Below, one piece after another: positions 15,047 through 41,143 of a DNA stretch of 64,000 bases. The DNA comes from Octopus bimaculoides. Lineage: Eukaryota. Position 1 is the first letter of the stretch; each line of letters opens with the position of its first letter. The DNA is taken from assembly GCF_001194135.2 (NCBI RefSeq), contig NC_068994.1, forward strand, positions 36,970,498-37,034,497, given 5' to 3'. A model generated the notes under the pieces. The model was not told where the DNA came from and searched no databases. It saw only the letters and a program-made list of their open reading frames with translations. A program made the translations under genes and the position numbers.

Positions 15047-15054
15047 TATATATA

Positions 15055-16135: not shown

Positions 16136-16168
<33 letters not shown>

Positions 16169-17007: not shown

Positions 17008-18304
17008 CATACATACATGCATACATACATACACACATACATGCATACATACATACATACATACATGCATGCATGCATGCATGCATGCATGCATGCATAC
17101 AGACAGACAGACAGACAGACACATACACACACACATACACACACAGACACACACAAAATGATGGATTGCAATCAGAGTTTTCAACCATGATTTTGATCAA
17201 CTGATTTTTGATCCGCTGAATTATCAAACTCATGTAAGCGGTTGAGTAATCCGCAAACATGTTGCGTATCCTTAATGTAATTCTCTGGCAGAGTCTGTGT
17301 ATCACAATGTGACAAGGTTAGGCCTTTGAAGTACAGTGTAATCCAGCCAGCATGCTTCCATACAATTCCCATCTACCCTATTTCACTTACATAGATAGAT
17401 GAACATGAGGTTACAGAAAATGTTACTTGACCATGACATCACACATTGAGATCAAAATGAACAGCTTGTGATTAAGAAGCAATCTGCTTAATTGTGCTTA
17501 AACATGTACATAGACACACGCCACATATATTCATATACTCTTACACATGCACACCTGCGTTCGTATGTAAATGTTTGTATGTACATTTTTATGAAAAAAT
17601 ACATCATTTAAACCTAAATTATTTAGATTAGTTTCTTGTGAGTGGTTGACAGTAAGCAGAATCTACTGTCGGAATTTAATTCACTGTTGAAATGATTTTG
17701 CATCAATTTCAATTATAAGCTATTATTGGTAAAGGCATGAACATCACAACACATCCTTTAAAAGATAGTTCTGAAATGGCTGCATACTTAAGGTAGTACA
17801 TTAGAAATCATAATTATCAAATGTGTTAATTCTATACTCTTCAGCTCATCTAGACTTGAGGACTTGGCCAGAAATTTTGGAAGTCATACTTGTGATAGTC
17901 TGATGTTCTCTTCTGGGAAGATATTTATTCAGTTTTTATTTAATGCTATAAGCTTTCAGTTAATTGCCAAAACTTGTGAGACACAAGAGACTTTAAAGAT
18001 TCACCTCTTTATAATGCTCAGTATATCTTTCGTTGGTACACAACCTTTTTTTCAGTACTCACAATCAAAATTTACATATAGCAAATGATAACATAGGGAA
18101 AATAAACATTGGAGATATTTTGCCCATCTATTAAGTACAGAAACTACTCAGAAGTATTGCAAGCTCTTTTAAGTCCATCACAATTTTAGAAACCCTTCCA
18201 TATCATCAGCAGATATTTCAGGATCACAAGCATCTCATTCCTTAGCTTCTATGCTTTGCCTGAAAGGGGCAGCAAGGACTGAATTAGTCTTAGTCTGTAA
18301 AAGG

Positions 18305-18690
18305 GTTCCAACTTTGGTCTCTTGCTAACCGCAGCCAGCTGCTATACCTATCTCCTTGATGGCTTCTTCAGCTGTCTGGGTTCTAGTGCACCAATCTAGC
18401 TGGAGAGCCATGGTAGCCAAAAGCTTCAATGGAGAATGAGGCTACCTGCCATCCTTTAAGTGCCTCATCGACCAAGTCTTGTACGAAATTCTTTTACTGA
18501 TAACTCTCTGACTCTTTAAATCAACAGTTCCATAATGGAGCTTCAAAGACCTTTTTTCCACGGGAGGAAATACTGTAACACTGAACTCCTGATTGGTATT
18601 TGAAGAAAACAGTGAGTTGATGAAATAAAGTTCAGCCACAACCATGTGAAGATGCTGACATCAAATCTTGACTGGCATTTGGAAAAGAAA
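18305..18690 (-). mobile_element. HERO-like (RLE-type) non-LTR retrotransposon 3' remnant
   Basis: Fragments MVVAEL, QDLVDEALKGWQVASFSIEAFGYHGSPA and KEAIKEIGIAA..WLRLARDQSW resemble the restriction-like endonuclease C-terminus of HERO/R2-group elements. Confidence 0.7.
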
Positions 18691-20439
18691 TAGCTTATCT
18701 AATAGAATAGTGTCACGATCATGCTGTTATGATAACCTACATTTGATATTTCGAAGACTGAAATGAAAGTAAGGAAGAAAAAAAAATGTACATTTTCCTA
18801 TAAATATTTATCTTTCTTTGTTCACTTTAGCTAATACCATTTATAGAGTCCAAAAATATTTCAGACACATTGATGTTATGCTGGTATTACAAATGTAAAG
18901 GAAGTTACTTATATTTCAATTTACTCAATGATAACACTAAAATAGTCATGAAGTCAGATGTTATTACAAAATCTGTTCTGTTTATTCTATCTCTATGCAA
19001 TTCTCTATAAAACCATTCTAGAAATGTACCATCTCTTTTTCACATTAATCATGCTATTAATTTTTTCCCTCATAGCCATCTCATTTCTCTTATAGCCAAT
19101 GAAATTTTCCTTGATTGCTGTATGTGATATTAACTCTTGCATATTTATTCTGATGTTTCCCATTATTTCTATTTGTATGAATATCTCTGTGCATGGTATT
19201 TGGTATGTGTGTGAGTGTGTATCTGTATGTCTGTATGTTTATGTGTGCATATGTTTGTGCATGTGTGTGTGTGTGTGTGTGTATTTGTGTTCATGTGAAA
19301 ATGTACTTCTGTCTGTCAACTAGATTTAATCAAGGGCATGTCCCTCATCATACAATGATTCAACTAAATGTATAATACAAAAAAATGCTAGTGTGTTCTG
19401 AGGTGCACAGTAGGACAGAAGATGTTAATCAAGGTTTCAATACAATGCTGGTAATTCTATAATCCAAATGTTTAGACTTCTATCTGAAAGACTGAATCAA
19501 TTAATTAGGAGTTACATTGTAAAACACACTTGGATGTGTGAAAACAGGAGGAAGCAAGGAATATTTATTAATCAATCAATAAGCCAAGATTCAACACTAA
19601 TGGACAGATAAAGACATGATATCAGCACTGTTTAGTAACATGACACATTTTCCTTCTGTCAAATGTCACTATCACTTAACTATAGCCTCTATATCTTCAC
19701 TGATAGTTGATTAAATTTGTTACTTCTTTTTTACTATTGCTTCTTGTAACTCGATTCTTTATGTAACTTTTTTTTTTTCTATTATCAATTGATATGATAA
19801 ATTTGTTGAAAACTATCAATCACACCTTAACATCCTTTTGCATTGGTCTGTCTTTGTACAATGTTGCAATTACCAGGCCTTGTATTCTGAATGTGAACTG
19901 AGAATTTTCTCAAATACTTTTGCAAAAATTTTTTTAACTCAGTTTGAATGAAATAATTAAATTCTTGAAAGTCTTTTCTGATGTCAAATAATCTAATGAC
20001 ACAAATTGAATAAAGATAATTAGAATAACTGAAAGAAATATTAAGTTAGAAGAATATATAAAATGATCTCCTACACATCTCATAGAAGTATTCAATTACA
20101 GATTCTTAGTATTCTCTCAGCAAACTTCCTCTTTTTTTTTTCCAACTTATTTTAGCATTCTCTTAAATAGTTTTTCTCCCAGAGAAATCATGTGAGAATA
20201 TAAGAGTGGGCACCATCTCAGAATACTCGAGTATTTATATCAGGTGACATAAGAATATTTCAAGAAATAGGAGTCTATTGTGTAATCACTTTCTGTACAA
20301 ATTCTATTACTGCTGAAGCTATGTATTTAAGTTGGATTTGAACCAAAATTCTATTAATTCCAAGTTCTGATTTAGTGGAGTTTTCTTATTGATATTGATT
20401 AAGTAACAAAATATTTCAATAGAAATTATAAGTGTAAAA

Positions 20440-20448
20440 ACTTACCTG
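20440..20448 (-). other. Splice donor ending the ectodomain exon (CAG|GTAAGT, phase 0)
   Basis: Plus strand reads acttacctg at 20440-20448; the exon ends after Gln codon CAG. Confidence 0.88.
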
Positions 20449-22857
20449 ATGTGTCCCTTGGATAATATTTTGGTGTAATATTCCTGTTGGGGAATTTTTC
20501 CAATTTTGTCCAGGTTTATGTCTGGGAAGTGATTCTTTTTTAAGTGTAGCTGTCTGTGTATTTCTTTTCATGCTGTTGTCAGATACCATTGTAATAGAAA
20601 TATCATATTGAGGAGAGACAGTCTCAGAAACATATTCTGATGGTCTCCTCTCTTCAGCAAACTTATTATTCCCATCTACGTCGTTAGTATAGAGAAATTT
20701 TCTTTGGTTGTTTTTCTGAATGATACATATTGCAATGGAAACCACAATAGCAACAGATACAATGACAGCTGCAATAACTATAACAGCAACTAAATTAAAA
20801 TGTATCTTTTTATCAGCCTCTATGCCTATAGGTGTAAACATCTTAGACGTATTGTTACTGACAGTCAGTGTCAAAGACAGTATAGTTGTTGCTGATAAAA
20901 CTGGTGTGCCACTGTCTTTGACAACAAACTGAAGATCATATAATCCTGCATCATTTTGGTAAACTGTTCGATAATAAGACAAAGTTCCTGTGTAAGGATT
21001 TATTGTAAATAATTGTTTTCCATTTCCAGAAAGTATTTCATATTTGAGAAAAGCATTCACGTGACTGTCTCTGTCTGAAGCTCTCAAGGTTGTAATGTCA
21101 CTATTACTCTGTGGATGGTAGTGAACATCTAAAGTGAAAGGGCTAACACTGGGAAATGTAAAATAGGGAGCATTATCATTTTTATCCATAACTTCCACAA
21201 TTACAGTAGCAGCGTTACTTAATGGCGGAATACCATTGTCTTTGACTAAAACTTTAAATTTATAGACGTCTTGTTGTTCCCGATCCAACATTTGAGTCGT
21301 TACAATAAATCCAAAGTTGGATATCTTAAAAGGTAAAACACGGTTGTGGTCATTCAACAAAGAGAAAGAAAGTCGACCACCAGATCCTTGGTCTTGATCA
21401 GTTGCATTTATCAAACCAATTGGAAAATTTGGTTTCTCATTTTCATAAGTTAAAAATTTGAAAACATCACGAGTAAAATGTGGTTGAATGTCATTGATAT
21501 CTTTTACTTGAACTGTAAACATTCTTTTGGTTAGTAAAGGGGGCAACCCTTTGTCTTCACATACAACTGCAAAATTAAGTTGACTTTGACTTTCTCTGTT
21601 CACAGTATTTTTGATGACTACTTTGTATTTGTTTGTTCCCAAACTTCTGAGTTCCAGTTTGTCATGTTCAAGCTGACAGGAAACTTCTCCATTTAAACCA
21701 ATATCATTGTCTATAACTTTCACATAAGCAATGAAACTTCCAACTTTTACTCCTTCAGATATTGTTACTCTGTTGCCTTCAAACTTTGAAACAAACTTCA
21801 TATCTATTCTTGGAGCATTATTTTCTTCGTTTAATATGTTTATCAAAACAATTGCAGTTGAACTTAAGGGAGGATTACCATTATCAATAGCTTCAATATA
21901 AAGCTTATACATTTGTTTCCTTTCACCATAGTTTGTCCGAGACTGGAAAATCTCTCCCGTTTTTTCATTAATTGTAAAATGAGATTTTGCAAGAGGAGAT
22001 GTTTTTGAGCCAAATTGGTATAAAATTTCACCATTTTCCCCTGAGTCTAAGTCTGTTGCATGCAAAACAAACACTGGAATATCTTTCCGAAAACCATTAT
22101 TAATTGATACATTATATATATCCTGAGAAAAGGATGGAGAATTATCATTTTCATCTGTAACTGAAATCTGAATATCTAAAATGCCTTCCTTTGGTGGTGA
22201 GCCGCCATCTCTGGCAATAACCTGCAGAGCATAGCTATCTTTCAATTCTCTGTCAAGTGCTTCTTCTAACATGATACCAATTTTAGCTGTTCCATCAACT
22301 TTTTTATTAACTGATAAAGAAAAGGGTTCATCTAGGTTCTTGTAAAGCTGATAATTAATCTGGTTATAAAGTGTGCTAACATCTTTGTCTAAAGCATTCG
22401 GTATTGATTTCATAAAACCTTCTCTATCAGTTTCAGAAAATTGAAGTTTGATTTGTTTGCTGGAGAATTCAGGAGCATTGTCATTAATATCATCAATGAT
22501 TATTTTAATTTCCAAAATTCGGACAAAAGATTCCTCATGCCTGACTGCAATCTCTACCATTTTAAAACATTCTGAATTATATTTACAGAGGGATTCAGCA
22601 TCTAATATCTGTGTTGTGTACATTTTACCTGAGCTAGTTATGTTAAACAGTTCAAAATCTTCACTAATACTTTCATGTAACTGGCTGAATGTAACAGAGC
22701 CATGTTCTTGAGAAGGCATGCTGTCCAAAAAATGAGTTTCATCAGCAATATTCCCTATAAATGTACCTGGACTGTGACCCTCTGGCACATGGAAGATAAC
22801 ATCTACAGACAACGATTCTCCAAGAATGAACAATACTACACAAAATTTTAACATCAT
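20446..22857 (-). CDS. Pcdh: Protocadherin large ectodomain exon (804 codons): signal peptide, EC1-EC6, TM (~20719-20792), proximal cytoplasmic tail
   Basis: Uninterrupted ORF. First ATG is 22857 in an AAAATG context (the ORF-track start at 22863 is TTG, preceded by an in-frame TGA). EC1 has the C-X5-C motif (CKYNSEC). Cadherin linkers DINDNAPEF, DENDNSPSF, EENNAPRI, DINDIQPHF, DKNDNAPYF; LDRE twice; hydrophobic LVAVIVIAAVIVSVAIVVSIAICII. Ends at a perfect CAG|GTAAGT donor in phase 0. Confidence 0.96.
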
Positions 22858-22874
22858 TTTCAATCATAAGTTAG

Positions 22875-22980
22875 CTGAGAAAACTGATTAATTTGTTTCA
22901 ACTCCAAATAAGTCTTCACTGTGAAGTAACAGTAGCCATCTTGATTTTTTCACTCATGAAGTAAATCTGGAAAAAAGTTG
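22875..22980 (-). other. Two candidate splice acceptors for the ectodomain exon (exon start 22966 or 22874)
   Basis: Minus strand aacttttttccAG|atttac (AG at 22968-22967) and cagttttctcAG|ctaac (AG at 22876-22875), both upstream of the ATG, implying a non-coding upstream exon. Confidence 0.6.
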
Positions 22981-23838
22981 ATTATTTTTCAATTAGCGAA
23001 ACATTATTTTTTTCAAGACTTTTAGAATTGATTTTTCACTCAATAAAATTAAAAGTACTTATTAAAATTTATCATTTATTCATTTACTTTTTTTATATTT
23101 CTATCTTTACAAAATTAGCTTAGCACAAAAATACAAATCTTAAATTAAAATCTGTGTAGATCTAAATTAAGAAGGAGTGTTTACTAAATTTTTTGGTTTC
23201 CATCCAAACTAATCTAGTGAAGCTTCAGCAAAGCCATGAGTAAATAGCATTATGAGTTTAAATTCCAATTTACTTCTATAAGCAAAGGTTTCACACTTTC
23301 ACACCATTTTTGGTTGGAAAGCATAGCAACAATATATTCATCACAGAAAATTTTTTCATAGATTATAAATGCTTCATAATCTAATTTGGCCAAGGTGATG
23401 AAAATGAAAATCTATTTTCATAAATGCCATATATTATTGTGAAAAGCTGCCTATTTGAAATAAGTGAAATACATTATTTGCAGATTAAGTAGGTTAAAGG
23501 GGAAAAATAAATTGAATATGAAAGGTTGAATAGATTGCCCCTTAGGATAAAGAGAATAAAAATTATGAATAAATTCATCTAAGTGGGTGAAATTTTAATA
23601 GCAGCTTCTTAGCCTATATTTTGTTTAAGATATGAAGAGAACAATCTATCTTTCTTTCTCTCTCTTACACCCATCCATGTAGGTGTCTTTGCTTAGATGC
23701 ATCTGCATTTCTTCCTCTTTATCTCTCTCTGTCAACATACAAAGAGGTATGTGAGTGTATACATATATAAATACATACACATATATATATATATATATAG
23801 TATGCATGTATGTGTACATATATCTTTTATACATAGAC

Positions 23839-23898
<60 letters not shown>

Positions 23899-24988
23899 TT
23901 GCATGTCTTTTAGCAGTGGCTTGTCAGTTTCAAAGTGGTTTAGAATGAATGAAAAAAGTAAGCTCCTTCCCACCACTTGCTTAGGGGCTCACCTTGGGGA
24001 AATAACAAAACCTCACCCTAGATTCAATTCTTTCTTTAGCCTCCTAAACTTCATTCACCTGAATAAAGATGTCCAAAATGACTGCAAATCTCCGTCTCAT
24101 GCCAATAATATTTTGTTATTGGTAAACCTAGCAGAGCTGACAAGGGAACAGATGGAGAATAGTGGAGCCCCAGTTCAATTTAATCCTGTTTCAATTCATG
24201 TGAGTTGTTAATGCAGATTACACATGTTTCAATAAAACCTTAATTTAGTCTTGATAATTTTGTCTTCAACCAAACTGAGATGATATCCTTATATATATAT
24301 TTATACACACATACACACACACACACACAATATTATATTATATATATTATTTATGTGTTTGTGTGTGTTTTAAATGTGTGTCTGTCTGGCGGGGTGGGGG
24401 TAAGGCAGAGAGAAGGAGATAAAAAGAGATATTTAACTGCTGTAAATCCATTTTCCCATGTTAGAATGGGTGAATGGTTTTGCATATTTAGATATTTGCA
24501 TATTGTTGGAGCAAATGTTTTTACAGTTGGATGCCTTTCCTAATGTTAACTAGCCAACCATAAAGCGGGGCTGAGACTATTTTTCAGCTACCTATACTGA
24601 AGCAATGCACTTTGAACTCATTAAAGTGTGGTCAGCAGTCCAGCACATCATATTAATGGCCTTTGCATCTCTGCCTATAGATGCTTGTGTATTTATGTGT
24701 GTATATATGTATATATTATGTGTGATTGTTAGTATATGTTAGTATGTATGTATCTATGTAAGTGTATATGTATGCATATTTGCATGAATGACTGTATCTA
24801 TCAATTCATTAAAACACACACACATGCATATGTACACACACTCACACACATTTAACTAGCTAAATGTATATATCTAAATGCATGTATTGGAGGATATTTA
24901 TACTTGTCTCCATATTGCCGAATGGCTGCTTCTTACACATATTTGCATATACACTTACACATATGCATGCATGCATCATACATACACA

Positions 24989-25070
<82 letters not shown>

Positions 25071-25910
25071 TACACACATATTCACATATGAATATTTGTA
25101 TGTGTGTACATATATGTATGTGCAAATATATACAGAAACAAATGTATATATGAGACAACCAAACAAGTAGAACGAAAAGTTATTTATTCAGAAAGCTGGG
25201 GATGTTGGGAAAAGCTTTTGATTACATTCAGCCATTTACTTGTAAAATAAGTGAAATCCGAAATGAGTAAAATATATAAGTATATATATAAATATATATG
25301 TGTGTCTCTGTGTGTGTGAGTGTAAACAAATAAAAATTCAGAAAAATAAAGGTAAAGGAAAATAAAAATTGAGAGATTCAACATTATGGAATTATATATC
25401 TATGCCAATAAATCAATAATCAATCACTTAGTGAGATATTGAGTAGTTTTGTATAGATGAGAAGGACATTTAAAGTAAACCCAGCTGAATAAATTCAGAT
25501 AAATCACACTCAGACCAAAATATGGTGTAGTAGGCAATGATTAACATAGCAAGAATTGGAAACCACACAGCGGCCTCCTGGGGTTCACAGCCACAGATAC
25601 ATCCAACTTTCTCTATTAAATTTTTAATCACTTATGGAGTGAAAAATATCAATAATATATATTAATATACATACATACATACATACATATATATGTGTTT
25701 GTGTGTGTATGTACATACACGTGTTTAAGCATATATGTGAGAGAGGGAGAGAGAAAGAGAATGAGTATATTTTTGTGTCTAACTCTGTTTGTAGTTATGG
25801 ATGTATGTCTGCAAATTTGTGTGTGTGTGTTATGTGTTATGTATATTTACCTATAATATCTATCCATCTATCTATATGTATCTATATATATGTGTGTGTG
25901 TGTGTGTATA

Positions 25911-25968
<58 letters not shown>

Positions 25969-26287
25969 GCATGCCTATAATATATATATACATAGATAGA
26001 CAGATTTGGTAACAATAGAAGAAACAGAATTCAATACATATGAATACTTATTTATGTCTACATTTTTTAATCAGTTGTAAAATTAAAGTGATTTGAAAGC
26101 TGAGACTTTCACACAATCCAGGAGTTTGTTAAGTTATATCTGGACGTAAATATTAGCACCAGTGTTATAACAATGTATGACATTGTCTGATCCTCTGAAA
26201 GTTCTGCCAATCCACTGTATATACATATGTGTGTGTGTTTGTGTGAATGCACATATGCACATTCATATATCTATCCCTGTGAATGTA

Positions 26288-26321
<34 letters not shown>

Positions 26322-26445
26322 AATATATGTAAATAGACTTTTACACACACATTTTACACACACACACACACACAAACATACATATATATGTATATGCAGA
26401 CTCATATTTACATACTAATTACATATGTATGTCTGCATATGTATG

Positions 26446-26493
<48 letters not shown>

Positions 26494-27129
26494 AAGGTAG
26501 ATTGGTAGGACTATTGGGGAGTTTGGCAACATATTGTACATTATCTGTTGCAGGTCTTTGCTCCATAACAGTAATGTCTACTACAATACTTGTGTTAACA
26601 TTTATTGGGCCAAATTGGTAGCATTTCCTTGGATAAATATTGTTGGTGAGGAGCAGAGAGTTTTGCATGCACATCATACAACTGACAGTCATTTTTCATA
26701 AAATTTTGCCCAAGCCTTTGCCTATGTGTGCAAATGCAAGGCCAGCCTTCACTGAGATAGGTTCTATATATTTTTATGTACTTTGTGATTTCATTTTCTT
26801 GTCGTCACATCACAGTTCTTCTAGTGCTCTGAGGTTTAACGGTCTGTTGATAATGTGATAAAACAACTTTGGTTTTCACTTGACAGCTGATGAGGGGAGT
26901 ATAGTGTTCATGTTTTTGTCATGACTGGTGCATTTTCCCTGTAATCCATTCTTAGTTTTTTTCCTATGTGATCATAATGTTACTGGCTTTTGACATCACA
27001 TTCATATACATTGTATATATGAAAGTATGTGTGATCTATAGTTTCCTAGTTCTTTCTATCTCATACTATATGAACTCTGGTGTACTTATTGTTTAATGCT
27101 TTACCTATTCACTTCCTTCTGTACTCAAA

Positions 27130-27860
27130 CACCAATTTGCCATCACCATCAAACAATATCTTCCCTTATGGTGATGACACTTTCATTCCCATTTAATCTT
27201 ACCCAGTCATACATCATCTATATGCAACCTATAAGCTACACACAACATCTCTAATTTCAGAAAAAGAGACCCTGAAAGTTTCCTATAGTAACCAAGCTAA
27301 TCTTCTTCCTTTTAACAACCAAAAACTCAAAAACAAAATCACTGATATCAAGAAATTATCAGAACAATTGTCCATTTAAAATTAAGCAACACAGATTAGT
27401 AAATCCACTCTCCCTCCAAATGTTAAGCTTTCAATTACCAAGGGTATCTCCTGATGAAAGCACATCATTGCATAGCATTTCAAAGGCTGGTTCCTCTCTT
27501 CTAAATATTTCACACTATCAACCTGCCTCCTACTAACAACCTACAAACCTCATGTGAGACCTATAATGGAGCATTACTCCTTCATCAGGGACAGTATTGT
27601 TTCTGCACACACAGCCATCCTTGGCTACATCCAGAAAAAGATCATTCAAATGGTTACCATAAAATTCGCTAACAAAATTCAAGCTTTAGCCTACAAGTGT
27701 GTCTCTTGTCTCTAGCTTTTTCACTGTTAATATGTGTTTGTTCCTTGCAACTGGCTGAACTGTCTACCACAACTGCCACTTCTAAATCACTCCTCTCTTT
27801 TTCTCTAATCCATCTATTCTCCAGGCACCATACCAATAACTATGCCTAGTTCTTTCTTAG
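27130..27860 (+). mobile_element. Old CR1/Jockey-like LINE RT C-terminal remnant
   Basis: LLTTYKPHVRPIMEHYSFIRDSIVSAHTAILGYIQKKIIQMV at about 27530-27660 matches the YKxxVRPxLEY..LDRIQ motif; many stops. Confidence 0.65.
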
Positions 27861-28319
27861 AATATCAGCTCTATGAAATTCACTCTATGATTATGTTTCC
27901 CCTGCTGGTGTCAAATTGCAAAAGCTTGCCTCAGGCATTAAAATATCAGTCTCACTGGTCTCCCAGTAGTAGATACATAGCTTTCTAGTAAACCTTATGG
28001 CTCTCTTCACTCTGAGGTCTAATTAATTTACTGTTCAACTTTTGGATGGAAGTTGAAAATATCATACACATATTGGTCAATTTTATCCTTCCTCTCACTT
28101 TTACTTTTTGTCCATCCTGTCTGCCTCTCTATATGGTAAAAATCTGTTAAGATCAGACCTGAAGGTGATCAGGTTGCATAAGGCCTAGAGGTGCTCAGGA
28201 TATGCTGTATGTCATGTGGTGAGTCTGTGACTCAATCAAGTTTATGAAGGCAAGGCATGGTTTGAATATGTAGAGATACACACACATACATATATGCACA
28301 AGTGTGTTTGGAGAGAGAG

Positions 28320-28440
28320 AAAGATACTCATAGTTGCATAAATGCACATATGTGTGTGTATGTGTGCATGTATGTATACACACAGAAACATGCATACATA
28401 CATGCGAACACACACATATCTCTCTCTCTCTCTCTCTCTC

Positions 28441-28525
<85 letters not shown>

Positions 28526-29017
28526 TGTGTGTATATAAGAGATGAAAAGATGAAAGCCAGTATAATAAAGGTTATTGTAGAATAATATAATACAGTCATC
28601 ACAATGTGCTAAACATCTTTTTCATGATGTGAAGTCATATTTTCAAAATTCATTCTCTGAGTGTGAACACAAATTACACTTGTTTGATAACTTTTTTGTT
28701 CAGTCTGACGTTGGTTACTTGAAACTCTCACCAACAGTTTGTGAAGTTTTTGCAGATACAATAAAGCACCACTTTTAATTCTATGTTTAGTACTTAAGTA
28801 CTATTTTCCACTAGGTTTTGCACGTCTGCTTCAAAATACATACATACATATATACTAATATGTGTGTGTGTGTATGCGTGCGTGTGTGTGTGTGTGTGTG
28901 TGTCTATGTATGCATATCATATTATGTATATAATATATTAATATGGTATATATTATATATGCCACATCCCAACATCCATACTTAAATTTGTATAAATAAA
29001 AAATATATAATACATAC

Positions 29018-29059
<42 letters not shown>

Positions 29060-29131
29060 TATATAAACAAATTCTCCTAAATATGTACATATATATATAT
29101 ATAAACAAATTCTCCTATATATGTGCATACA

Positions 29132-29164
<33 letters not shown>

Positions 29165-29837
29165 GTACATATATGGGAGAATTTGTTTTGGGGGTTGAAA
29201 ATGAACCTGAATCTCAAGATGTGTAGTTGTTTTAAAANNNNNNNNNNNNNNNNNNNNNNNNNNNNNNNNNNNNNNNNNNNNNNNNNNNNNNNNNNNNNNN
29301 NNNNNNNNNNNNNNNNNNNNNNNNNNNNNNNNNNNNNNNNNNNNNNNNNNNNNNNNNNNNNNNNNNNNNNNNNNNNNNNNNNNNNNNNNNNNNNNNNNNN
29401 NNNNNNNNNNNNNNNNNNNNNNNNNNNNNNNNNNNNNNNNNNNNNNNNNNNNNNNNNNNNNNNNNNNNNNNNNNNNNNNNNNNNNNNNNNNNNNNNNNNN
29501 NNNNNNNNNNNNNNNNNNNNNNNNNNNNNNNNNNNNNNNNNNNNNNNNNNNNNNNNNNNNNNNNNNNNNNNNNNNNNNNNNNNNNNNNNNNNNNNNNNNN
29601 NNNNNNNNNNNNNNNNNNNNNNNNNNNNNNNNNNNNNNNNNNNNNNNNNNNNNNNNNNNNNNNNNNNNNNNNNNNNNNNNNNNNNNNNNNNNNNNNNNNN
29701 NNNNNNNNNNNNNTATATATGTATATATATATGTATGTATATGTATATATATATATGTATATATATATGTATGTATATGTATATATATATGTGTATATAT
29801 ATATGTATGTATATATATATATATGTAGATATATATG

Positions 29838-29886
<49 letters not shown>

Positions 29887-29923
29887 ATGCATATATGCAT
29901 ACATACACACTTAAAATTTTTAT

Positions 29924-29966
<43 letters not shown>

Positions 29967-30409
29967 CTCATATACATATGTGTGATGGGGAGGTGAAGGT
30001 GCATGTTTGTGTTTCTGAGTATTCATATATTCATAACTAAGTTAGGAGTGACAGTGAATTATTGTTATAAATATTATATGTGATCATATAATGCTCTCAC
30101 ACATGTATAAACATGCCCTCCTTCATATAAATATAATTTTTTGATTGTGTACACACACACACACATACACACACATGCGCTTGCATGCACACACACACAT
30201 GTCTATTACCCCACTCCTGTTTCTTTAAGTTTCACTTCATACCTTAGCTCATATGTTTGTGTGTGTGTATATAAACATAATTCATATTTACATACACATA
30301 CTCACTTAAACATATGCATATATATATTTACATTTATGGAGATATACATACATACATAGACACATGAACACACACATACATATACATACACACACACACA
30401 CACACACAT

Positions 30410-30440
<31 letters not shown>

Positions 30441-30603
30441 CATATACAAGTATACTCGATGTATACAAATACAGAAATATTCCAGCATGGCCTTATGTAT
30501 GTTGGTTAAAACAAACTAAAGAATTAAAGTGCATGCACATATGTCCCATTGTGCCACACACATTTATAGATAAAATCATTCACTCTCTGTCTCTCTTTCT
30601 GAC

Positions 30604-30657
<54 letters not shown>

Positions 30658-31120
30658 TTGTGTGTGTGTGTGTGTGTGTGTATATATAATCAATCAAAAT
30701 ACATATAAATAAATGTGTATATGTATACATATGTATATATTATTTCATCATCATCATCATTATCTAACATTCATGTTCCATGCTGGTATGGGTTGGATTA
30801 TCTGGACTTTCCTATATCTTCTGTTTCCGAAGAAGAGCTTTGCTCAAAAGGTAAAGCAACCACTCTTTCTTTCCTTCTCTTAGCATCTTATTATTACTTT
30901 GCATGTTCCACGTCCTCATGCTGTTTGTTTTCTTGTCTTTTTTTCTGTTGTTTGATTAATTATATACATACACACACAACACACACACACTTAGATACAA
31001 ATATATGTATAGATATATAGATAGACACAAACACACACACAGACACACATCTGTACATATATAAATATGCATCCACATGTATGTATATATGTCAATATAT
31101 ATATGTAAACAAATAAACTT
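28320..31120. repeat. Dense compound microsatellite field (AT, AC, CT, ATAC); similar arrays occur throughout the window
   Basis: Long perfect dinucleotide and tetranucleotide runs. These explain most short ORFs in the ORF track. Confidence 0.95.
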
Positions 31121-31590
31121 TTTTGCGTATATAAACACACTTGTACATAACTGGTTGAAACTATTAAACAATGTGACCAACAAAATTGTGCTGTATGTTT
31201 GCATTCTATTTTTGAAGTTTTGGTTTTGTTGCTTCACAAAGCTATGTTATGTGTACTTTTCTAACTTTGCATTCATATATTTAAATATATCACTTTAATT
31301 GCCTTTGCTTAATATAAAAATAAGTTAAGTTCATAAAATTCTGTGTAAATTCCTATGTACTATTTTCAAAACACCTGCAGAATTTACTTTTTAAATTACT
31401 AGAAATTACTTTGGGAGAAAAAGGAAAAAAGCAATCAGAAAATATCATCACAACAAGATTAAGTTTAATAGAAAATCACAGAAATGTATTTTTGTAATAA
31501 ATATATCACTTAAATATGTAATTATGCAAAAGAATGAAAATAATGATAATAATTAATCAAAGAACAAATGAATCATGGAAAGAAATAACT

Positions 31591-31865
31591 ACTCACTGAT
31601 GCAGGTAAATCCTTGAAAGTTTTCTTGAGATTAGAAGTGTATCCTGCTGTCGAGTTGTATTCAATGCTAGCTGCTGTTGTGTGCTGCTAATATTATATAT
31701 GGCTTGGTCTGTGTTGTGTGAGCATCAGCTAGAAAGAGAGTGGTAGAAGAGGAGTGAAACCAATAGAGAGAGAGAGAGTGTGTGTGTATGTGAGAGAGGG
31801 AGTGTGAGAGAGGTCTGCAGTCCTATCTCATATAAAGTGAATGTAATGTCTGCTGCAGCCAATGA
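31591..31865 (-). promoter_or_regulatory. Candidate promoter and non-coding first exon of the 22857 protocadherin
   Basis: Minus strand TATATAA at 31699-31693; CCAAT boxes at 31760 and 31859; CT/CA-rich island; donor TCA|GTGAGT with exon end at 31597. Lies between the upstream gene's putative 3' end and the acceptors at 22.9 kb. Confidence 0.45.
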
Positions 31866-34711
31866 CAGGCTGGTTTGTGGTTCCCATGGAAGGGAAACGG
31901 AAACCCTGCCTCTACTTCTTGTAGCAGAGAAGTAGATTAACTGAAGGATTGAGTCATTGAGAATTATATCAGTTCTTACACACTTTTCTATATATTCAAC
32001 TCACAGCTATAATTTAGTTTCACAATACATTTTTGAAATACTGTTCATTTTTTTCCATAATTAAATAACACTGACTGTTAATAAACAGCTTTTCAGATAA
32101 ATCAATTTAAATTCAATATCTGTCAAAAAGAAAACTATTTAATAGATTCAACAATAACTTATCCACAGTCTATTTGTCAGTTCTTATGGAATCAGGCATT
32201 TTTCAAGGAAAATTCTGTGGTCATTGAAAGTATCTCATTATAGCTATATATCTTTATTGACATAAATTTCTAAAGTAAAAAAGANNNNNNNNNNNNNNNN
32301 NNNNNNNNNNNNNNNNNNNNNNNNNNNNNNNNNNNNNNNNNNNNNNNNNNNNNNNNNNNNNNNNNNNNAAAAAAAAAAAAAAAAAAAAAAATGAAGACAA
32401 AATAAATAAAGGGACATGAATTATCTATAATATTACCTTTTCAAAGGCTTATAGTTATCTGAATCAAAGTTCAGCATATATGGATTTATGTCCGCAAGTA
32501 AATGATCAATGCAAAAAATAAAAAAATGAAAATAGAAAAGAAATTATTGATTCTGTACTTACATTAAGTTTTTCCTTTTTTATAGCTATTTTTCACACTT
32601 GTTTAGCAGACAATATCTATTTTAATGAAAGATTTTTCTTATCTTTAGAATGGAAAAAGTTTTTACTTCTTTATTGAATTATATTAAAATTTCTCTCTTC
32701 ACTTTTTTCCTCTCTTGTTACTGACACAATAATGAAATCATATTGTCAGTGTCTGTTTAAGCTAATGAAATTTATAGACTAAGTTTAAAGAAAGTAATTA
32801 GTAATGTTGCTATCACACTCTATATTATCGACACAGCCAGTTTAAGCATCTTTAAGAGTATCTATGATTATGATGTAGGTGTGTGCTGGAGATATACTTT
32901 TAATCTTTGTTGTTGTTTTTCTTTTTCTTCATTTCTTTTTCCTTTTTTTTTTTTTTTTCAAAAGGTTGAATCTTTAAATGAGATTATAAAGAATAACTAT
33001 GGATGGATATTGGAAACACCAGTTAAAATTAGCAGCAAAAAAGAAAACAAAAACCTCTTTGAGGTTTACATAGCTTACTTAGTGCCATTATTGATCTTAT
33101 AGAATATCTTTAAATGTATCCCTTATTTTGATTTACTGGACATTGTCCATAGTTTGTTCAGCATCGCTGCCTTCAGTTTGAATGATATCAGCAGAAGAAT
33201 TTTACTAGCAAAGGACTTGGAAAATAATCAACTCTTCCATTCACTATCATGCTAAACTGGTGCCTAATCTTCTGGAAGAAACTTGTATTGAGTCTTGAGA
33301 CAGTATTCAGAGTCTTACAAGCTCCAATAGCAACTCCCCAGCTGCAGCAGTCAGGCAAAGATGGCAGTTGGCATATTCTGAAGTGCACAGCTCATCATGG
33401 GGTTTAGATTTGATTCCATACAGTTGAACTGCTTCCAAGGAATTTACATTTTTTGCCAGATTTTGTTACCATGCTGCTTCTGCATATTCTAAATGTGAAT
33501 GTATCTAGTTTTAATACAGACCAATTGATATATCTTTCTCTTGGCTGACCACTGCTGGACTCAACCAGCAGAGCATTTGATTGGCTTTGTTAATGGCGTA
33601 AATCCTCTTACCATTTGCCTTAGATCTCTTTCAATCAATACTATGAGGTCTTACCCTACATCACTGTCTTCTAGTGTCTTCTAATTGATTGCATTGAATA
33701 CTAAAAGTAACATGGTTATTCTAAATACCAGTGCTTCTGTAAACAATCAGGTAGGAAAATTCAGATATCTGATGCAAAATAGTTTGCACAATTATTAGTG
33801 TTGTAAATTTTCAATGAAATAATGGTTAATTGTCAAACTGGCATGAATGTTTGTCTTTTTTTATTTATCTTAACTATTTTGAAGATTTTCAAGTGAAATT
33901 CTGAAACTGTAAAGCAGATCCAAAATTCATTATCATTCTACTATACTCAAAGTTCAATGAAATAAGAACAGATTATGTACCACTTCAAAAGTCCAGATGC
34001 ATAAAGGTTTGGACAAGAATTCTCTATTAGCTTTTGTGTAGTTGCTAATCCATAAAGCAATAACATTTACATCAGTTGACATCACTTTATTTGCAAATAG
34101 TATGTTTTAAAATTTAATATATCAGAAATGAAAATGTAGTAGCCATTCATATCTGCACTGATCTTTTTACTGATTTAACTTTGTCTTGAGTTACTATCTT
34201 ACTTATTTAAATGTGATGCATATAACAATGAAGAGTGCATTACAAAAAGAAATAAAAAGAGATCTGTACCTTTTACATGTGCTCTTTAACAGCCTTCGAT
34301 TAGATTAGACTTCTCATTCCTTCAAAGAAGAGCTCTGTTTGAAGCATCAGTATTCACTTTACCTTTCAGTATCTCACCTCATTTTATCTAATGAATTTTA
34401 CACCTGTACTCTAATTAAGTTTTTATGATTGTATTAGTTGTGTATTTGTACACTGTTCACTCATAGAGATTGTTTGAAATATACAACTTGCATTATGGTA
34501 AGTTTATGAAAATCTTGAATATGAGGCTTCATTTGGACTATCTGCATCAGTGTTCAATATTGTATCAGGCATACTGATGTTTATAGAATGTTTACGTAAT
34601 ATGCATTCTTGATGACTTATGGATTGTATATATCAATACAGTGCATCAAATTTATTAAAACAGTTAACTCTTTTAAAGGTCTAGATTATGATATTGAATA
34701 AAAAAATTTAA

Positions 34712-34747
34712 CTGTACACAAAAAAAAACCATCTTTGCAATTTTATT
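34712..34747 (-). terminator. Candidate polyadenylation site of the upstream protocadherin (3' UTR about 2.6 kb)
   Basis: Minus strand AATAAA (34747-34742) followed 13 nt later by T9GTGT, a U/GU-rich downstream element. Proximal AATAAA alternatives at 37211, 36684 and 36194. Confidence 0.4.
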
Positions 34748-37075
34748 TAATATTGTAAATATAACATTATATATTACAACTAGTTTTCTCCGTTGTGTTA
34801 TGTCACTTGGATATAGTTTTATGATATAACATTTTTTAAAAAGAAAGTATGTATACTGGCAATAAAAACCTAATTATTCAATAATACTTATCTTAAAGAC
34901 TTCGCTATAGTTATTAACTGTGTCATATTGCAGAATAGAAGAAATATATAAATGAAATAGATTTATCTTTGAAAAAGCTAAGCAGTTCTCAGTGTTTAGG
35001 AAAATCTATTGTAACATCAGACATTTTCTAAAGTATGACCAATAGAGGCTCTTGAGGTGGAAATGAGAAAGAAAACTCTTATAAACCTATAGAAATTTGT
35101 GCTACATACCACAGTAGGATTTCAAATGGAAATCAATGTTATCAATAAAATTGATATTCTTTAATCTTAACAAATGAAATAAAATTTCAAAGAGAGAAAT
35201 CAATACGTAAAAATAATACTTGCTTTTATAGAGTACATTCCCCTCTGCCAGTATGTCTTTTATAGTGAGTTCTATTTTTCTTGTGATCACAGGAACAAAG
35301 AGGAGACCTTTTTTGATGCGTTTTACTATCAAGCAAAGAAATACTATTCGTTCTGTCAAGTTTATGTCATGTCTAGAAACAAGAATCTCATAATATCTTT
35401 TAGCACAATATGAACATACTAATTTCTTGAAAGAATCAATACAGATAACATAAAAAGACATGTATGTTCACAAAGAAACCTATACACTTGGTAATGTGTT
35501 AGCAATATATACATATTAACGACGACAATGATGCTGACAACGACGATGATGCTGATGATGATGATGATGAGGATGACATTGATAATAATGTCAACGATGA
35601 CAATGTTGTTGATTATGACAATGGTAATGACAATGCTGCTGCTGATGATGATTTAGCATTTAAGATTATATTAATGAGTGGTTCTCAAAAATTAGGGTGA
35701 TTTATTTATGAGAATTTTGTGTAAAGATTAAATCTTTGTTTCTCAAATTTTCTAAATATTTCGAACCACTCAAACATAAAAGAAAACAATGAAATAAACA
35801 AATTAAATTAATAATTTGTTAATCATTTTGTTTCTTTATCTATTCCCTAGCTCATTCAAGCTCCATTTTATATTCATGAAACTGTTTAACTACAAGCAAA
35901 ACCCTCTTTCTCTCTGTAAGTAGTCAGCTAAACAAGAGAATGAGGATGTTGCAATTGTTTGTCTTTTGTTTAAAATATTTCTTTAATTTTTGCTCCAAGT
36001 TATATTTCTCTAATATTTGTACAATGCTTTAAAATATTATAAAGGTATTGAAAAGCTGAAAACTATAATAAAACCAAATCTGATAATCTTAAATATTCTT
36101 CTAATAAAATTAGAGAAATTATTGTGATAGAATCTGTTTAAATCTGACAAGAAAAAATAGATAACAATGTTTACGTTTATAGAAAAGTTTTATTGGAATA
36201 GTTTAAGGGCACAAAAAACAAAACAAAACAAACATTTTTCTTATTCTTCACCTCCCCTCCCCCTCCCTCCCTACCTCCTCCCTCCCTCCTCCTCTTCTTC
36301 TTCTTCTTCTTCTTCTTCTTCTTTGTAGTTAGTATTCATGTATGTGTGTGTGATTTTCATTCATTATGCCTCAGTAATATAATTTAATACTTTAATATGA
36401 CGTGATGATTTGATGGAAGGCTAAAGATATTTGGCTTTTGGGGAGATGTTTACTATTACACAAATAACATTCTGCTTAAGGTGGTCATTTGTTGAAGAAA
36501 ACATTAACTCTAATATTGCAAGACATGCTTTCTAAGCTTAATTGAAAGTTTAAAACTAGAATGACTATCAAGATTATTTCTCTTACTAAATTTAATGAAA
36601 GATAAATGTAGAACAGAAACAGTGCAAAAGGTAAGAGAAAATAGGTGGGGTGATACAAAGCCATAGAAATGCAACATATTTATTATTGAACGGGTTCAGT
36701 TTGAACAGATCTGTAACTTCAAATCAAACTTAATTAATTATGAAAGCCTCATTTTGGTTTACAACTGAAATATTTAAATCTCTAAGCTTGGGAAGATCAA
36801 GTAAATGAGGGGAGAAACAAACAAACTGTCAACCAAAATTGTTTAAATGCATATTTTCTATTAAGAGGGTAATTTTAGATAACATCACACATTCTGAACA
36901 CATAAATAATAAATGTCTTTTGGTTTCCTTTCTGTTTTTTTTCATCTCTTAATATGTACCAGCAATAGTGAAATATTAAAGGAACAATTATTTTTAATAC
37001 TGGAGTATATTACAAATATACATAGTTCTGCTTAAATAATGCAACAGTATGTTATATATGTATGTATGTATGTAT

Positions 37076-37128
<53 letters not shown>

Positions 37129-37305
37129 CATACATACTCTCTCTCTCTCTCACACACATACACACACACACATATTATTCAATACAGAGACTGGCAGAAA
37201 ATATTTTTATTTTGACCCTGTAAAAGAATAGTGAAAATAAAAAAAAAAAGACAATAGTTTATGAGTCAATTCAACTTTAGAAGAATTTAGTACCAAATCT
37301 ACATT

Positions 37306-37592
37306 TTATGAGTTTGGTAATATTTTTGGTACTGCAGGGAGTGGCTTAGCATATGATGTGAAACTATTCCTACTTGGTAAATTCCACAACTGTGTAGGTA
37401 TAGTAGAACTGGAAGTGTTCACACGTATTGATTTCAAATCAATCACATCATTGCAATGAGAATTCTGGCCAGCATCGTTTTGGTCAAAGCGACCACCACC
37501 TGTTGTCTTTGATTCTGTTGATTTATTTAGTATCTGTGGTAAAGACATTGAACCTGTAGTGTGGAGTTTTTTTTGTTTGTAAGGCTTGAAAC
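37306..37592 (-). CDS. Terminal cytoplasmic exon of a second, upstream protocadherin gene
   Basis: Strong acceptor tttctttctctttttcttcAG|GT at 37594-37593, phase 1. Open frame FKPYKQKKLHTTGSMSLPQ...DLKSIRVNTSSSTIPTQLWNLPSRNSFTSYAKPLPAVPKILPNS*. I recall WNLPxRNSFTxYAKPLPAVP as the C-terminus of octopus protocadherins (from memory, needs BLAST). Same strand as the ectodomain exon. Confidence 0.75.
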
Positions 37593-38016
37593 CTGAAGAA
37601 AAAGAGAAAGAAAATATAAACTGTATAGAAAGAAATACTCAGGGATTCTTGACAGAGATAGGAAAGGAGGTTAACACACATTATATTGTTTAAATATCAT
37701 GTTATGAAAATGACACAGTAGGTAATATATTTAACAACTGAAGTAATATATCATTTATTTGCTATGGTTAAAAGAAACTAAGAGTTATGTTCCCTAATGG
37801 TCTCTGAAACAAAAACAAATATAAGATATTCTTGAATTATTTCCTTCTTTAGAGCATAGTGAGATCAAAATATTCATGCATGCTTATTAATTTGATTGTT
37901 AAAGTACGGTAAAAATGACATTTCTGCTCTCAAAGTTTAAAATTATATATTAAGAAACTGTGAACTCTGAACTGGTTGAAAAACAGACACAGACACACAC
38001 ACACACACACTGACAT

Positions 38017-38072
<56 letters not shown>

Positions 38073-39983
38073 AAAATACAGACACATATATATTTATATA
38101 GATGGACACATGTGCATGGCTGGGTGGTTAAAGAGTTTCCTATACAACCTCATGGTTCTGTGTTCAAGTCCTATTGTAAGGTATTTTCAGCAAGTGTCCC
38201 TATTTAGCAAGTGCTTGAGGTTGACTAGGTGGAATTTCATGGATGGAAGCTACTGTCTTATGAATGGGAGTACTTAAACAATACCTACGTGAATAGATTT
38301 GAGTTTGTAATTAAAACTGTAATTATTTGATACTATATGACATTTTCATGTGGAAGGATTCCCTGGAAACAATTTTACCTTGTATGTAAACATTAAGGAC
38401 TTCTCTTTTCTCTTGATTCCTAAACTACTGATAAACTATGAAGAGAAATAAAATAAAAACATACATATTCCATGAATTTCATCCAGGTTAATTATTTTCA
38501 TCTTTAACAAAATATTTCCATTCATAAAATGTTTAATTCACAAGTCACTTGTTATATCATGCTGATGATTTCAAAAATGAATGAAAGAGTACTATACATG
38601 ATGCATTATCTAACAGATCGATTCCCTTCCTATTGCTAACCCTTATTTGGTTCCCAAGTATTAAGGAATCTCACAAAAGGGCAAAGTGAGTAGATGATTT
38701 GTTGACAAGTGGACTGACCACAACACCGCATGTCAAAACCTTAACAGATGTCAGTTGTAAAAAGCACAGGCACACACATGCTTACTCATATAAACACACA
38801 CGTACGTACACACACACACACAAAAAAAAACATGCACACATATATTTGTATATATAGATACCAGGGCTAATAAATTTGTTACTTCAAGTTGGTTATCTTA
38901 ACATGTAATGTATTATAACTGGATTCCAAGAGGCTTTTCATGTAATCATGTACATACTTATGTATCTTACTCAAACCTCCATGATATTAATTGCGTCTTT
39001 CTCTCATGTAAAATATATTGGAAGTAGGATGTTTAATAACTATCTTACTCTAACTAATAAACAAATTGTGTATGTTGAATAAGAATGGTAAAAGGCAAGT
39101 TTAAGAAATGATTTACCAGCCACACTACTTCTTTCAAGTGTATCAGTGAGAGAAAAACAACAACTGTTTCTAATTATACTGAGATTAAAAAAGAATAAAA
39201 TTGACAATCGAATAAAGTGGAAAATTTATGAACATAAGATGATGTAAATTATATACTGCAGAAAAGATCACCTAACATAATAGCACCAAAGCCTCATATA
39301 AATATTTAAACACTTTAAACTTTATCCAGTGCCACCACTTTTATAAGGATTTGTTAAAATTTTTGAAAACCAATTGAACAACCTGACTTGTTATACATAA
39401 ATAGCAACAATAGTTATTTTTTTGACCAGTAACCTACATTTCTTACTCATTCTGGTGCAACCACACCCTTCAAGACTCCCACAGTTACATGAAAATATAC
39501 AACTATTGAACTTTCCACACCAACCTAATATAAATGTCTCATACATTTAATGCTAATGCTTACCTCCTCTTTTTGTTTATCAGCTTCTGAATAACTAGTT
39601 ACATTTATTAAATGGTTTTAAATGTCATTAGTATGCAATTGAGAGATTTTTCTATATATTTTGCAATGCTAATTGCACCAAGTAAAGTAATCCAGTAGGT
39701 TAACCATTAATTATTCCCCATTACATTAAATTGCAATTGGTGAGAAAAACAGCATTTATATTAAGGAGTTTTATGTAACACAGACAACGAAGATACTCTT
39801 GGAATCTTAATTCTTCTGTCTTTTATTTTGTAAATGATTGGTGGAACTCAGATAAGCAAACTTAACTATCCTGAAAATTAAAAACTATTAAATAATAAAA
39901 TTTAATATAATTTGTATAAAGTTCTCTCTTTTTGTCTCATGGAGCCCATATTATGATATATCATTATCATCACTACCATCATA

Positions 39984-40619
39984 CAGGGTGGTTCAAAAGT
40001 CACAGAGAGGTCTAAAAGTTTAATAAATTTGTTTTAATTACATTTATTTTATTTGTAATTCATAAAATGGGACTCTTCATTCCTAATGTACATATATTTC
40101 CTATATCATCCATGCTGGTGGCATGTAAAGAACATCTTTTGAACGTTGGGCCTCATGGAGGCAATGTGGCTGAGTTCCTTTCAAGTGTTGGGCCTCACAG
40201 AGGCAATGACCAAAATTGTTGGTATTATGTTATGCTTGAGAAGACCCATCAAGCCAAGCAAAATCACAGTCATGGCAGATACTGGTATCACACAAATTGG
40301 CACCTGTGCCAGTAGCACATAAATGCACCCCAGTGTCATGCAAATGGCATGTAAGAGCACCCATTACACTTTCAGAGTGGTTGGCATTAGGAAGGGCATC
40401 CAGCCATAGAAAATCATGCCAAATCAGACTGGAGTCTCGTGCAGCCTTCCAGCATGCCAGCCCATCAAACCATCCAACCCATGCCAGCATGGACAATGGA
40501 CATTAAATGATGATGATGATGATAATGATATAGATATACTGTATGTGGTGCTAAGTTTCCATGAATTTAAAACAGCATAAATTAATTATTAACACCTTTG
40601 TGACTTTTGGGCCACCCTA
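39984..40619. mobile_element. Mariner-type MITE interrupted by a SINE
   Basis: TA-CAGGGTGGTTCAAAAGTCAC ... GTGACTTTTGGGCCACCCTA-TA; SINE insertion at about 40085-40530. Confidence 0.8.
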
Positions 40620-40847
40620 TAAAAGTATCAATGTCCTCTTTTCCATGCTCACATGAGCTGGGCTGAATTTTGTTGTGGCAAATTTTCGATGGTTGGATGC
40701 CCTTTCTGACACTAAATCTCACCTGTTTCCAACTAAGATAATATTTCCTCATGAGCAAACAAGTTTGCACAGAAAATTGAAAATGAAGGTGATACCGGTT
40801 TCAACTATCACACAATATCAAAGTAACGAAACAGTAACATACAACCA

Positions 40848-40887
<40 letters not shown>

Positions 40888-40938
40888 TACACAAACACAC
40901 ACACGCACACACATGTATACATACACACATGTATACAT

Positions 40939-40987
<49 letters not shown>

Positions 40988-40989
<2 letters not shown>

Positions 40990-41143
40990 ATGGTTATCTT
41001 TAGGTTTCCATCTACTAACTCCACTCAGAAGGTTTTGGTTGGTTTAAGGCTACAATAGACATTTACCCAAGGTGCCATGCAGTGGGACTGAACCGAAAAC
41101 ATTATGGTTGGGAAGCAAAATTTTTACCACACAGCCACATCTG
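40988..41143 (-). mobile_element. Family A SINE head
   Basis: CCCAAGGTGCCATGCAGTGGGACTGAACC..CCACACAGCCAC is the reverse complement of the head. Confidence 0.75.

Follow-up and report, generated by a model that had tools for sequence, protein, structure and literature searches.

The window, i.e., the entire stretch of 64,000 nucleotides of Octopus bimaculoides DNA that was analysed, comprises parts of two protocadherin genes, of which one contributes its last coding exon (the tail exon) and the other its large first exon (the ectodomain exon). With the minus strand encoding both, the tail exon (37592-37306) is located 5' of the ectodomain exon, at a distance of 14.4 kb, which is only approximate because assembly gaps fall within it. 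The following features were assigned:

37306..37592, minus strand: last coding exon of protocadherin beta-2, assigned by sequence and frame, 100% identical to residues 860-954 of XP_014777697.1 (P0152)
37527..37592, minus strand: reading of the tail exon in beta-2 isoform X3 (XP_014777699.1, P0148), mapped isoform, frame 0
37593..64000, minus strand: 3' portion of the final beta-2 intron, with no match to the beta-2 ectodomain or middle exon
22858..37305, no strand: intergenic region from the beta-2 stop to the beta-13 ATG, microsatellite-rich, holding the beta-2 3' UTR and the beta-13 5' region
20446..22857, minus strand: exon 1 of protocadherin beta-13, 100% identical to residues 1-804 of XP_052829030.1 (P0154)
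16680..16712, minus strand: short alternative terminal exon of beta-13 isoform X2 (XP_014777701.1), mapped isoform, ...THQ joined to IFPQEKVWNH and a stop
1..20445, minus strand: 5' part of intron 1 of beta-13, the middle and tail exons of which are outside the window

The tail exon is preceded by a polypyrimidine tract and an AG (37594-37593), and its acceptor is of phase 1, as the first two bases from 37592 complete a split codon. The frame comprises 94 codons and ends with TAA at 37308-37306. Its product is 100% identical across 95 residues, mapped exactly to 37592-37309, to XP_014777697.1, which is isoform X1 of O. bimaculoides "protocadherin beta-2" in RefSeq; a match of this kind goes far beyond what chance would produce. 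The frame and the acceptor confirm the sequence-only reading in its recognition of a phase-1 terminal exon 5' of a same-strand ectodomain exon, and the identity to XP_014777697.1 bears out its assignment of the peptide as a genuine protocadherin C-terminus. Two conserved cytoplasmic motifs, NDVIDLKSIRV and WNLPSRNSFTSYAKPLPAVPK, are encoded in this exon. Neither the tail nor the entire cytoplasmic region matched any family in Pfam scans, and the tail motif is therefore lineage-specific. The tail differs in two residues between O. bimaculoides and O. sinensis, and the tail exon is 59% identical to that of the Argonauta orthologue (P0006). In isoform X3 (XP_014777699.1), exon 1 is joined straight to the tail exon, with exon 2 skipped, producing VSSLTNKKNSTLQVQCLYHRY followed by a stop; O. 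sinensis isoform X5 (P0153) has the same exon-skipping pattern.

In an indexed protein search, the tail peptide alone matched nothing but the ORF of the window itself and a single short Logan ORF, an exhaustive phmmer search with the tail against 1.84 billion representatives returned 14 matches, mostly short ORFs, and a search with Argonauta P0006 for its Octopus orthologue gave no match above 60% identity. These results were misleading or uninformative because XP_014777697.1 is hidden within a 90% cluster whose representative is another gene, where it was placed owing to an O. vulgaris model (1745 aa) in which both genes are fused; a listing of the cluster members resolved the matter.

The ectodomain exon, of 2.4 kb, has its ATG at 22857, an open frame to 20446 and a phase-0 donor (GTAAGT at 20445-20440). 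It is the first exon of O. bimaculoides "protocadherin beta-13" isoform X1 (XP_052829030.1), and it encodes a signal peptide, cadherin repeats, a transmembrane helix and a juxtamembrane segment. Six stretches match Pfam Cadherin (E 2.8e-67), in addition to an N-terminal Cadherin_2-like stretch. The exon is 98% identical to its O. sinensis counterpart (P0003) and 88% to that of Argonauta (P0004), and among 1852 matches at E <= 1e-20 octopod protocadherins ranked first. The ectodomain of XP_014777697.1 is a different one, and the beta-13 protein has its own tail (...IPKTICS), encoded outside the window and about 50% identical to that of beta-2, which agrees with the earlier statement that the tail at 37592-37306 and the downstream ectodomain exon cannot be parts of one gene. 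The alternative exon of isoform X2 (16712-16680) has a phase-0 acceptor (tctttcag); a mariner-like origin, considered on account of a resemblance, is at most possible for it, and a Pfam test of such an origin was negative.

Tblastn searches in which protocadherin ectodomains (first five, later ten) served as queries detected no other significant cadherin-coding segment across the whole 64 kb, so that the 26 kb above the tail indeed hold no further ectodomain exon, and no protocadherin-like coding segment was found with ectodomain queries in the intergenic region. The coding range of beta-2 is 129,287 bp in GCA_001194135.2 and that of beta-13 is 132,839 bp; therefore, the other exons of each gene fall outside the window. 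The tail of beta-2 is separated from its own ectodomain exon by more than 26 kb, as had been proposed, and the newer assembly puts the distance at about 125 kb. Two assembly gaps (14581-14590 and 15055-16010) are in intron 1 of beta-13, and two are intergenic, between 37306 and the ATG at 22857, one (29238-29713) bordered by microsatellites, namely (CATA)n and (TATA/TATG)n, and the other (32285-32368) by an A-run. As the two intergenic gaps break no coding exon, the continuity of frame across them is not at issue, and the long ORFs that cross them are merely translated N-runs and microsatellites.

Results of our analysis indicate that the window very probably represents the junction of two neighbouring, separately transcribed protocadherin genes of the O. 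bimaculoides tandem array, arranged head to tail and each provided with a private tail. Past the right edge of the window, the upstream gene, beta-2, has its large ectodomain/transmembrane exon and its small middle exon, and 37592-37306 is its private last coding exon. The downstream gene, beta-13, begins at 22857, and its donor at 20446 splices to private middle and tail exons past the left edge. The plan of each gene is that of a phase-0 exon 1, a small exon leading from phase 0 to phase 1, and a phase-1 tail exon. Each gene probably has an independent promoter, and rare splicing between different genes probably does not occur. The arrangement is one of ordinary tandem genes with very long introns.

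The relevant exon pairings recur in other octopods. Ectodomains and tails are paired as in O. bimaculoides also in O. sinensis and Argonauta hians, and the arrangement is conserved over three octopod genera. The Argonauta orthologues of beta-2 and beta-13 (P0006 and P0004) are encoded on one strand of one contig, with P0006 upstream, and have three coding exons each, including a tail of their own. The ectodomain of P0006 is 86% identical to that of O. bimaculoides beta-2, its gene occupies 37 kb and contains no nested ectodomain exon, and the Argonauta intron orthologous to intron 1 of beta-13 is of 63 kb. In O. vulgaris, the fused model CAI9732410.1 (1745 aa) runs the beta-2 tail directly into the beta-13 ectodomain, which indicates that the two genes are adjacent in this species too. 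The same geometry is found at another O. bimaculoides protocadherin gene, just upstream of which a gene of a 943-residue protocadherin ends on the same strand.

In vertebrate Pcdh-alpha and Pcdh-gamma, variable exons are spliced to shared constant exons, and the sequence-only reading had considered the tail at 37592-37306 as a possible constant exon of this kind. In such a system, several upstream variable exons with their own promoters would be cis-spliced to it. The geometry alone, with a strong acceptor and a tail far from its own ectodomain exon, would be compatible with such a system, but the remaining evidence makes it highly improbable. A single ectodomain exon and a single tail exon per gene were found in all four loci seen from start to stop (L001-L004: two Argonauta orthologues and two other O. 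bimaculoides protocadherin loci), including across introns of 14-63 kb. Each paralogue has a different tail, and no tail common to different ectodomains was found among 42 tailed models: tails are gene-specific and are alike only where the ectodomains are orthologous. Except for one paralogue pair (72%/60%), no tails of at least 70% identity accompany non-orthologous ectodomains, and none are identical. Tail and ectodomain diverge together between Octopus and Argonauta. In the RefSeq models of two Octopus species, and also in Argonauta, no ectodomain other than that of beta-2 is joined to the beta-2 tail, and all RefSeq isoforms that use this exon carry the beta-2 ectodomain, these RNA-seq-supported models being predictions rather than full-length cDNAs. 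In the window itself, a private tail is present between successive ectodomain exons, which is not the order of an array upstream of a single constant set. That no ectodomain exon is nested in the further ~100 kb of this intron of O. bimaculoides beta-2 is expected by analogy, namely, with the 37-kb Argonauta gene and with L003 and L004. According to Albertin et al. 2022 (PMC9068888), several first exons spliced to common final exons do not occur in cephalopods, so the question treated as open in the earlier interpretation had an answer in the literature. Thus, of that interpretation the identity of the peptide, the separate gene and the distant ectodomain stand, while the shared constant exon does not; the one-to-one joining of tails and ectodomains, which it had itself named as the mark of ordinary tandem genes, is what the loci and models examined display.

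Two further explanations concern the integrity of the locus. As two gaps of estimated length (29238-29713 and 32285-32368) separate the tail exon from the ectodomain exon, the piece bearing the tail might have been misplaced or misoriented in the assembly. We regard this as very unlikely: order and strand in the gap-free Argonauta contig agree with those of the window, the fused O. vulgaris model continues beyond the tail into the following ectodomain, and the beta-2 and beta-13 models have consecutive RefSeq accessions in O. bimaculoides and O. sinensis, which is weak support. The first indexed protein search, which gave no annotated protein, could raise the suspicion that the tail exon is no longer in use and is decaying as the relic of a gene since lost, but that outcome reflects a limit of the search, in which the bearer of the tail was hidden inside another cluster. 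With its frame intact, its 100% identity to a RefSeq model and its conservation in Argonauta, the probability of the exon being such a relic is close to nil.

Two neighbouring genes with private tails agree in every respect of substance with the tandem-array protocadherins of coleoids, which Albertin et al. are said to have described in 2015 as tandemly duplicated genes. Both have a single large exon, same-strand head-to-tail neighbours, private 3' exons and octopus-specific cytoplasmic motifs, beta-2 and beta-13 are themselves RefSeq-annotated members, and the window merely cuts both genes. Four features of the coleoid array were looked for and all were found here: the large exon, the head-to-tail order, the private 3' exons and the close relation to octopod protocadherins. 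In the published descriptions, the large first exon of these genes encodes the whole ectodomain with the transmembrane helix, and the genes, which are multi-exonic and have their own 3' exons, form a head-to-tail array on a single chromosome (Albertin et al. 2022, PMC9068888; Styfhals et al. 2019, PMC6339937).

Vertebrate clustered Pcdh genes likewise have large single exons for the ectodomain, transmembrane and juxtamembrane parts, in tandem and in one orientation, with the rest of the cytoplasmic part encoded in small distant 3' exons. However, 3' exons are shared within the vertebrate alpha and gamma clusters, whereas the octopus genes each have their own middle and tail exons and their C-termini differ; one C-terminus on several different ectodomains was not observed. 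In this regard, the octopus genes are closer to vertebrate Pcdh-beta or to the non-clustered delta-protocadherins, which are independent units, than to the alpha and gamma clusters. Had octopus possessed a shared constant exon, the splicing logic of vertebrate clustered protocadherins would, strikingly, have been invented twice, by convergence. The evidence shows that there is no such exon and that diversity at this locus, in line with the published account of the entire family, arises by duplication of whole genes, tails included, and not through the splicing of numerous first exons to common last exons. Since introns of these genes range from tens of kb to more than 100 kb, a 64-kb window routinely shows the tail of one gene beside the head of the next, and such a picture in octopus protocadherin DNA should not be taken as unusual geometry.

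A weaker form of exon sharing may be considered, although it is unlikely: the acceptor at 37592 might occasionally capture transcripts of upstream protocadherin genes, or beta-2 transcription might read through into beta-13, at which the fused O. vulgaris model CAI9732410.1 hints, with low-level chimeric isoforms as the outcome. Such isoforms, if they occur, would represent rudimentary exon sharing in the octopus array.

Results of our analysis indicate that the protocadherin tail exon regarded as an orphan in the sequence-only reading is, as judged by its sequence, the last coding exon annotated for the O. bimaculoides protocadherin beta-2 gene, and that the ectodomain exon downstream of it belongs to another gene, protocadherin beta-13. 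The two exons, and the two assembly gaps that lie between them, are as follows:

22857-20446, minus strand: protocadherin ectodomain exon; ATG at 22857, open to 20446, GTAAGT donor, phase 0
37592-37306, minus strand: protocadherin tail exon; long pyrimidine tract and AG, then phase-1 acceptor, 94 codons, TAA at 37308-37306
29238-29713: gap with flanking (CATA)n and (TATA/TATG)n microsatellites
32285-32368: gap flanked by an A-run

The ectodomain search returned octopod protocadherins, with XP_029645575.1 of O. sinensis as the top match (98%), followed by P0004 of Argonauta hians (88%). The identities were settled from the sequences of the proteins that cluster with the ectodomain match. The ectodomain exon is 100% identical to residues 1-804 of XP_052829030.1 (beta-13 isoform X1), and the tail exon is 100% identical to residues 860-954 of XP_014777697.1 (beta-2 isoform X1). 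The expectation of a distant upstream ectodomain for the tail was thus borne out, the coding range of beta-2 being 129,287 bp. The tail peptide alone, used as a query, at first matched no annotated protein, because clustering at 90% had merged beta-2 and beta-13 via a fused O. vulgaris model, CAI9732410.1. The beta-2 ectodomain (MKNFHKVMLAQ...) is unlike that encoded in the window, and beta-13 has its own tail (...WNLPTRNSFTSYAKPLPAIPKTICS), which shares only about 50% identity with that of beta-2 and was not found in the window.

The coordinates, phase and geometry given in the sequence-only reading proved correct. The donor of the ectodomain exon is of phase 0, since GTAAGT is met exactly at a codon boundary, and the acceptor of the tail exon is of phase 1, since a split codon is completed by the first two bases of the exon. 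The 804 residues of the ectodomain exon comprise a signal peptide, an N-terminal Cadherin_2-like stretch, six Pfam Cadherin stretches (E 2.8e-67) and a transmembrane helix. Pfam scans found no family for the cytoplasmic tail; from its composition one might guess that the proline-rich end, KPLPAVPK, resembles a docking motif. The earlier statement that the 26 kb above the tail exon hold no other ectodomain exon also stands: tblastn with five and then ten different protocadherin ectodomains revealed no further cadherin-coding segment in the whole 64 kb. On the minus strand, 14.4 kb separate the tail exon from the ectodomain exon downstream of it, a distance made uncertain by the gaps. Of four N-runs in the window, the two listed are located between the tail-exon stop and the ectodomain-exon ATG; as they touch no coding exon, frame continuity is not at issue, and only the intergenic distance is affected. 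Long open reading frames across these gaps are translated N-runs and microsatellites.

The sequence-only reading left open whether the tail is private to one gene or is a constant exon common to several ectodomain exons, as in vertebrate clustered protocadherins. Three tests point to a tail private to beta-2, at the level of sequences and gene models, and do not support the variable/constant possibility. Among tailed models (36 initially, 42 in the final set), every paralogue had a distinct tail around the core NDVIDLKS.RV ... WNLP.(R/K)NSF(T/S).Y.KPLPA(V/I)PK, and no identical tail occurred on different ectodomains among the 42. Pairs at least 70% identical over the last 60 residues are orthologues of different species, as their ectodomains are 81-99% identical; the sole exception is a pair of paralogues (tail 72%, ectodomain 60%). 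The exon census covered four loci seen from start to stop (288 kb, introns of 14-63 kb), two of Argonauta and two of O. bimaculoides (L003 and L004), the latter on CM046614.1, the chromosome of both window genes; each locus holds a single ectodomain exon and a single tail exon (4/4), as expected of ordinary tandem genes. Finally, all RefSeq isoforms with the window tail exon (O. bimaculoides X1 and X3, O. sinensis X1 and X5) carry the beta-2 ectodomain.

The locus comprises two independent genes of three coding exons in tandem, each with a private cytoplasmic tail. Each gene presumably has a separate promoter 5' of exon 1, and cross-gene splicing would be absent or negligible. The only hint of anything unusual is CAI9732410.1 (1745 aa), in which the beta-2 ectodomain, middle and tail exons to WNLP are followed by the beta-13 ectodomain. 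This model is probably a prediction artefact, but it may instead reflect read-through; chimeric or shared splicing at a low level seems very improbable. The two tandem genes are ordinary, already annotated and already described. Multiple first exons of cephalopods are not spliced to shared final exons (Albertin et al. 2022, PMC9068888), and the head-to-tail arrangement and octopus-specific cytoplasmic motifs have been described (Styfhals et al. 2019, PMC6339937). With these published statements, the shared-exon question had already been answered in print, and the window locus agrees. A feature in common with vertebrate clustered protocadherins is the large exon encoding ectodomain and transmembrane segment (2022 review, PMC10084454).

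The coding ranges in GCA_001194135.2 (129,287 bp for beta-2, 132,839 bp for beta-13) place the remaining exons of both genes outside the window; in O. sinensis, the beta-13-like gene extends over 136,967 bp. The exons of the Argonauta orthologues are:

P0006 (beta-2 orthologue), locus L001: 10001-12436, 14808-15059, 46788-47123
P0004 (beta-13 orthologue), locus L002: 10001-12418, 75417-75554, 76338-76703

P0006 is 86% identical to beta-2 isoform X1 in the ectodomain and 59% identical to the window tail. Both genes lie on one contig, BAAFZT010000037.1, on the same strand; P0006 comes first and ends 56 kb before P0004 begins, an order that matches that of beta-2 and beta-13 in the window. The exon 1 donor is of phase 0 and of GTAAGT or GTATGT type in every case. 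Octopus introns of the two genes are about two to three times the Argonauta length, and the genes are much longer (129 and 133 kb vs. 37 and 67 kb). Less intergenic sequence separates the pair in the window (14.4 kb, gapped) than separates the Argonauta pair (56 kb, 36 kb of it unseen).

Skipping of the middle exon shifts the frame, and RefSeq beta-2 isoform X3 (XP_014777699.1) exhibits exactly such a shift: its exon 1 is joined straight to 37592 and reads VSSLTNKKNSTLQVQCLYHRY, then stop. Isoform X2 of beta-13 has an alternative terminal exon in the window:

16680-16712, minus strand: ten codons, IFPQEKVWNH* (XP_014777701.1), 3.7 kb 3' of exon 1

At about 16.2-16.9 kb, translation of the other strand gives ...WPSCSPDLMVPDFFLWEYLKDRVY..., which resembles a mariner/Tc1 transposase C-terminus. 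The exon may therefore be an exonised antisense transposon remnant; a Pfam scan gave no match. No stretch of the window matched the second short terminal exon annotated for beta-13 (ESEISFPS*, XP_014777702.1), which may lie within the 956-N gap at 15055-16010 in beta-13 intron 1 or past the left edge; a further gap is at 14581-14590.

In O. bimaculoides P0021 (locus L003), the WNLP exon (44863-45093) is not the last one, and a seven-codon exon, DTKTELM*, follows 16 kb downstream (61492-61512); therefore, the 3' architecture differs among paralogues. The seven-codon exon appears to be conserved, as P0049, the counterpart in Argonauta, ends in ...KDTKTELV.

Several other features were noted in the introns. 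A 166-codon open frame in the beta-13 intron (11894-12391, plus strand) has C2H2 zinc-finger-like spacing (CGRKCFSHAGLVSHQRT..., CGKVCLSVGGLKRHVKRLH); its Pfam zinc-finger matches were all under threshold, and it is probably a degraded piece of a transposon or of the expanded C2H2 family. Three open frames on the minus strand (3895-4305, 6868-7167 and 12466-12792), adjoining (CA/TG)n microsatellites, have in common the motif ...SVS.YQIHSQ...AVVEDTCPRC..., which points to a single family of interspersed repeats whose copies have diverged beyond what self-BLAST shows at ≥150 bp. In the beta-2 intron, a 231-bp direct duplicate (55859-56089 and 56838-57068, plus strand; 100% identical, copies 979 bp apart) may result from recent duplication or from an assembly error.
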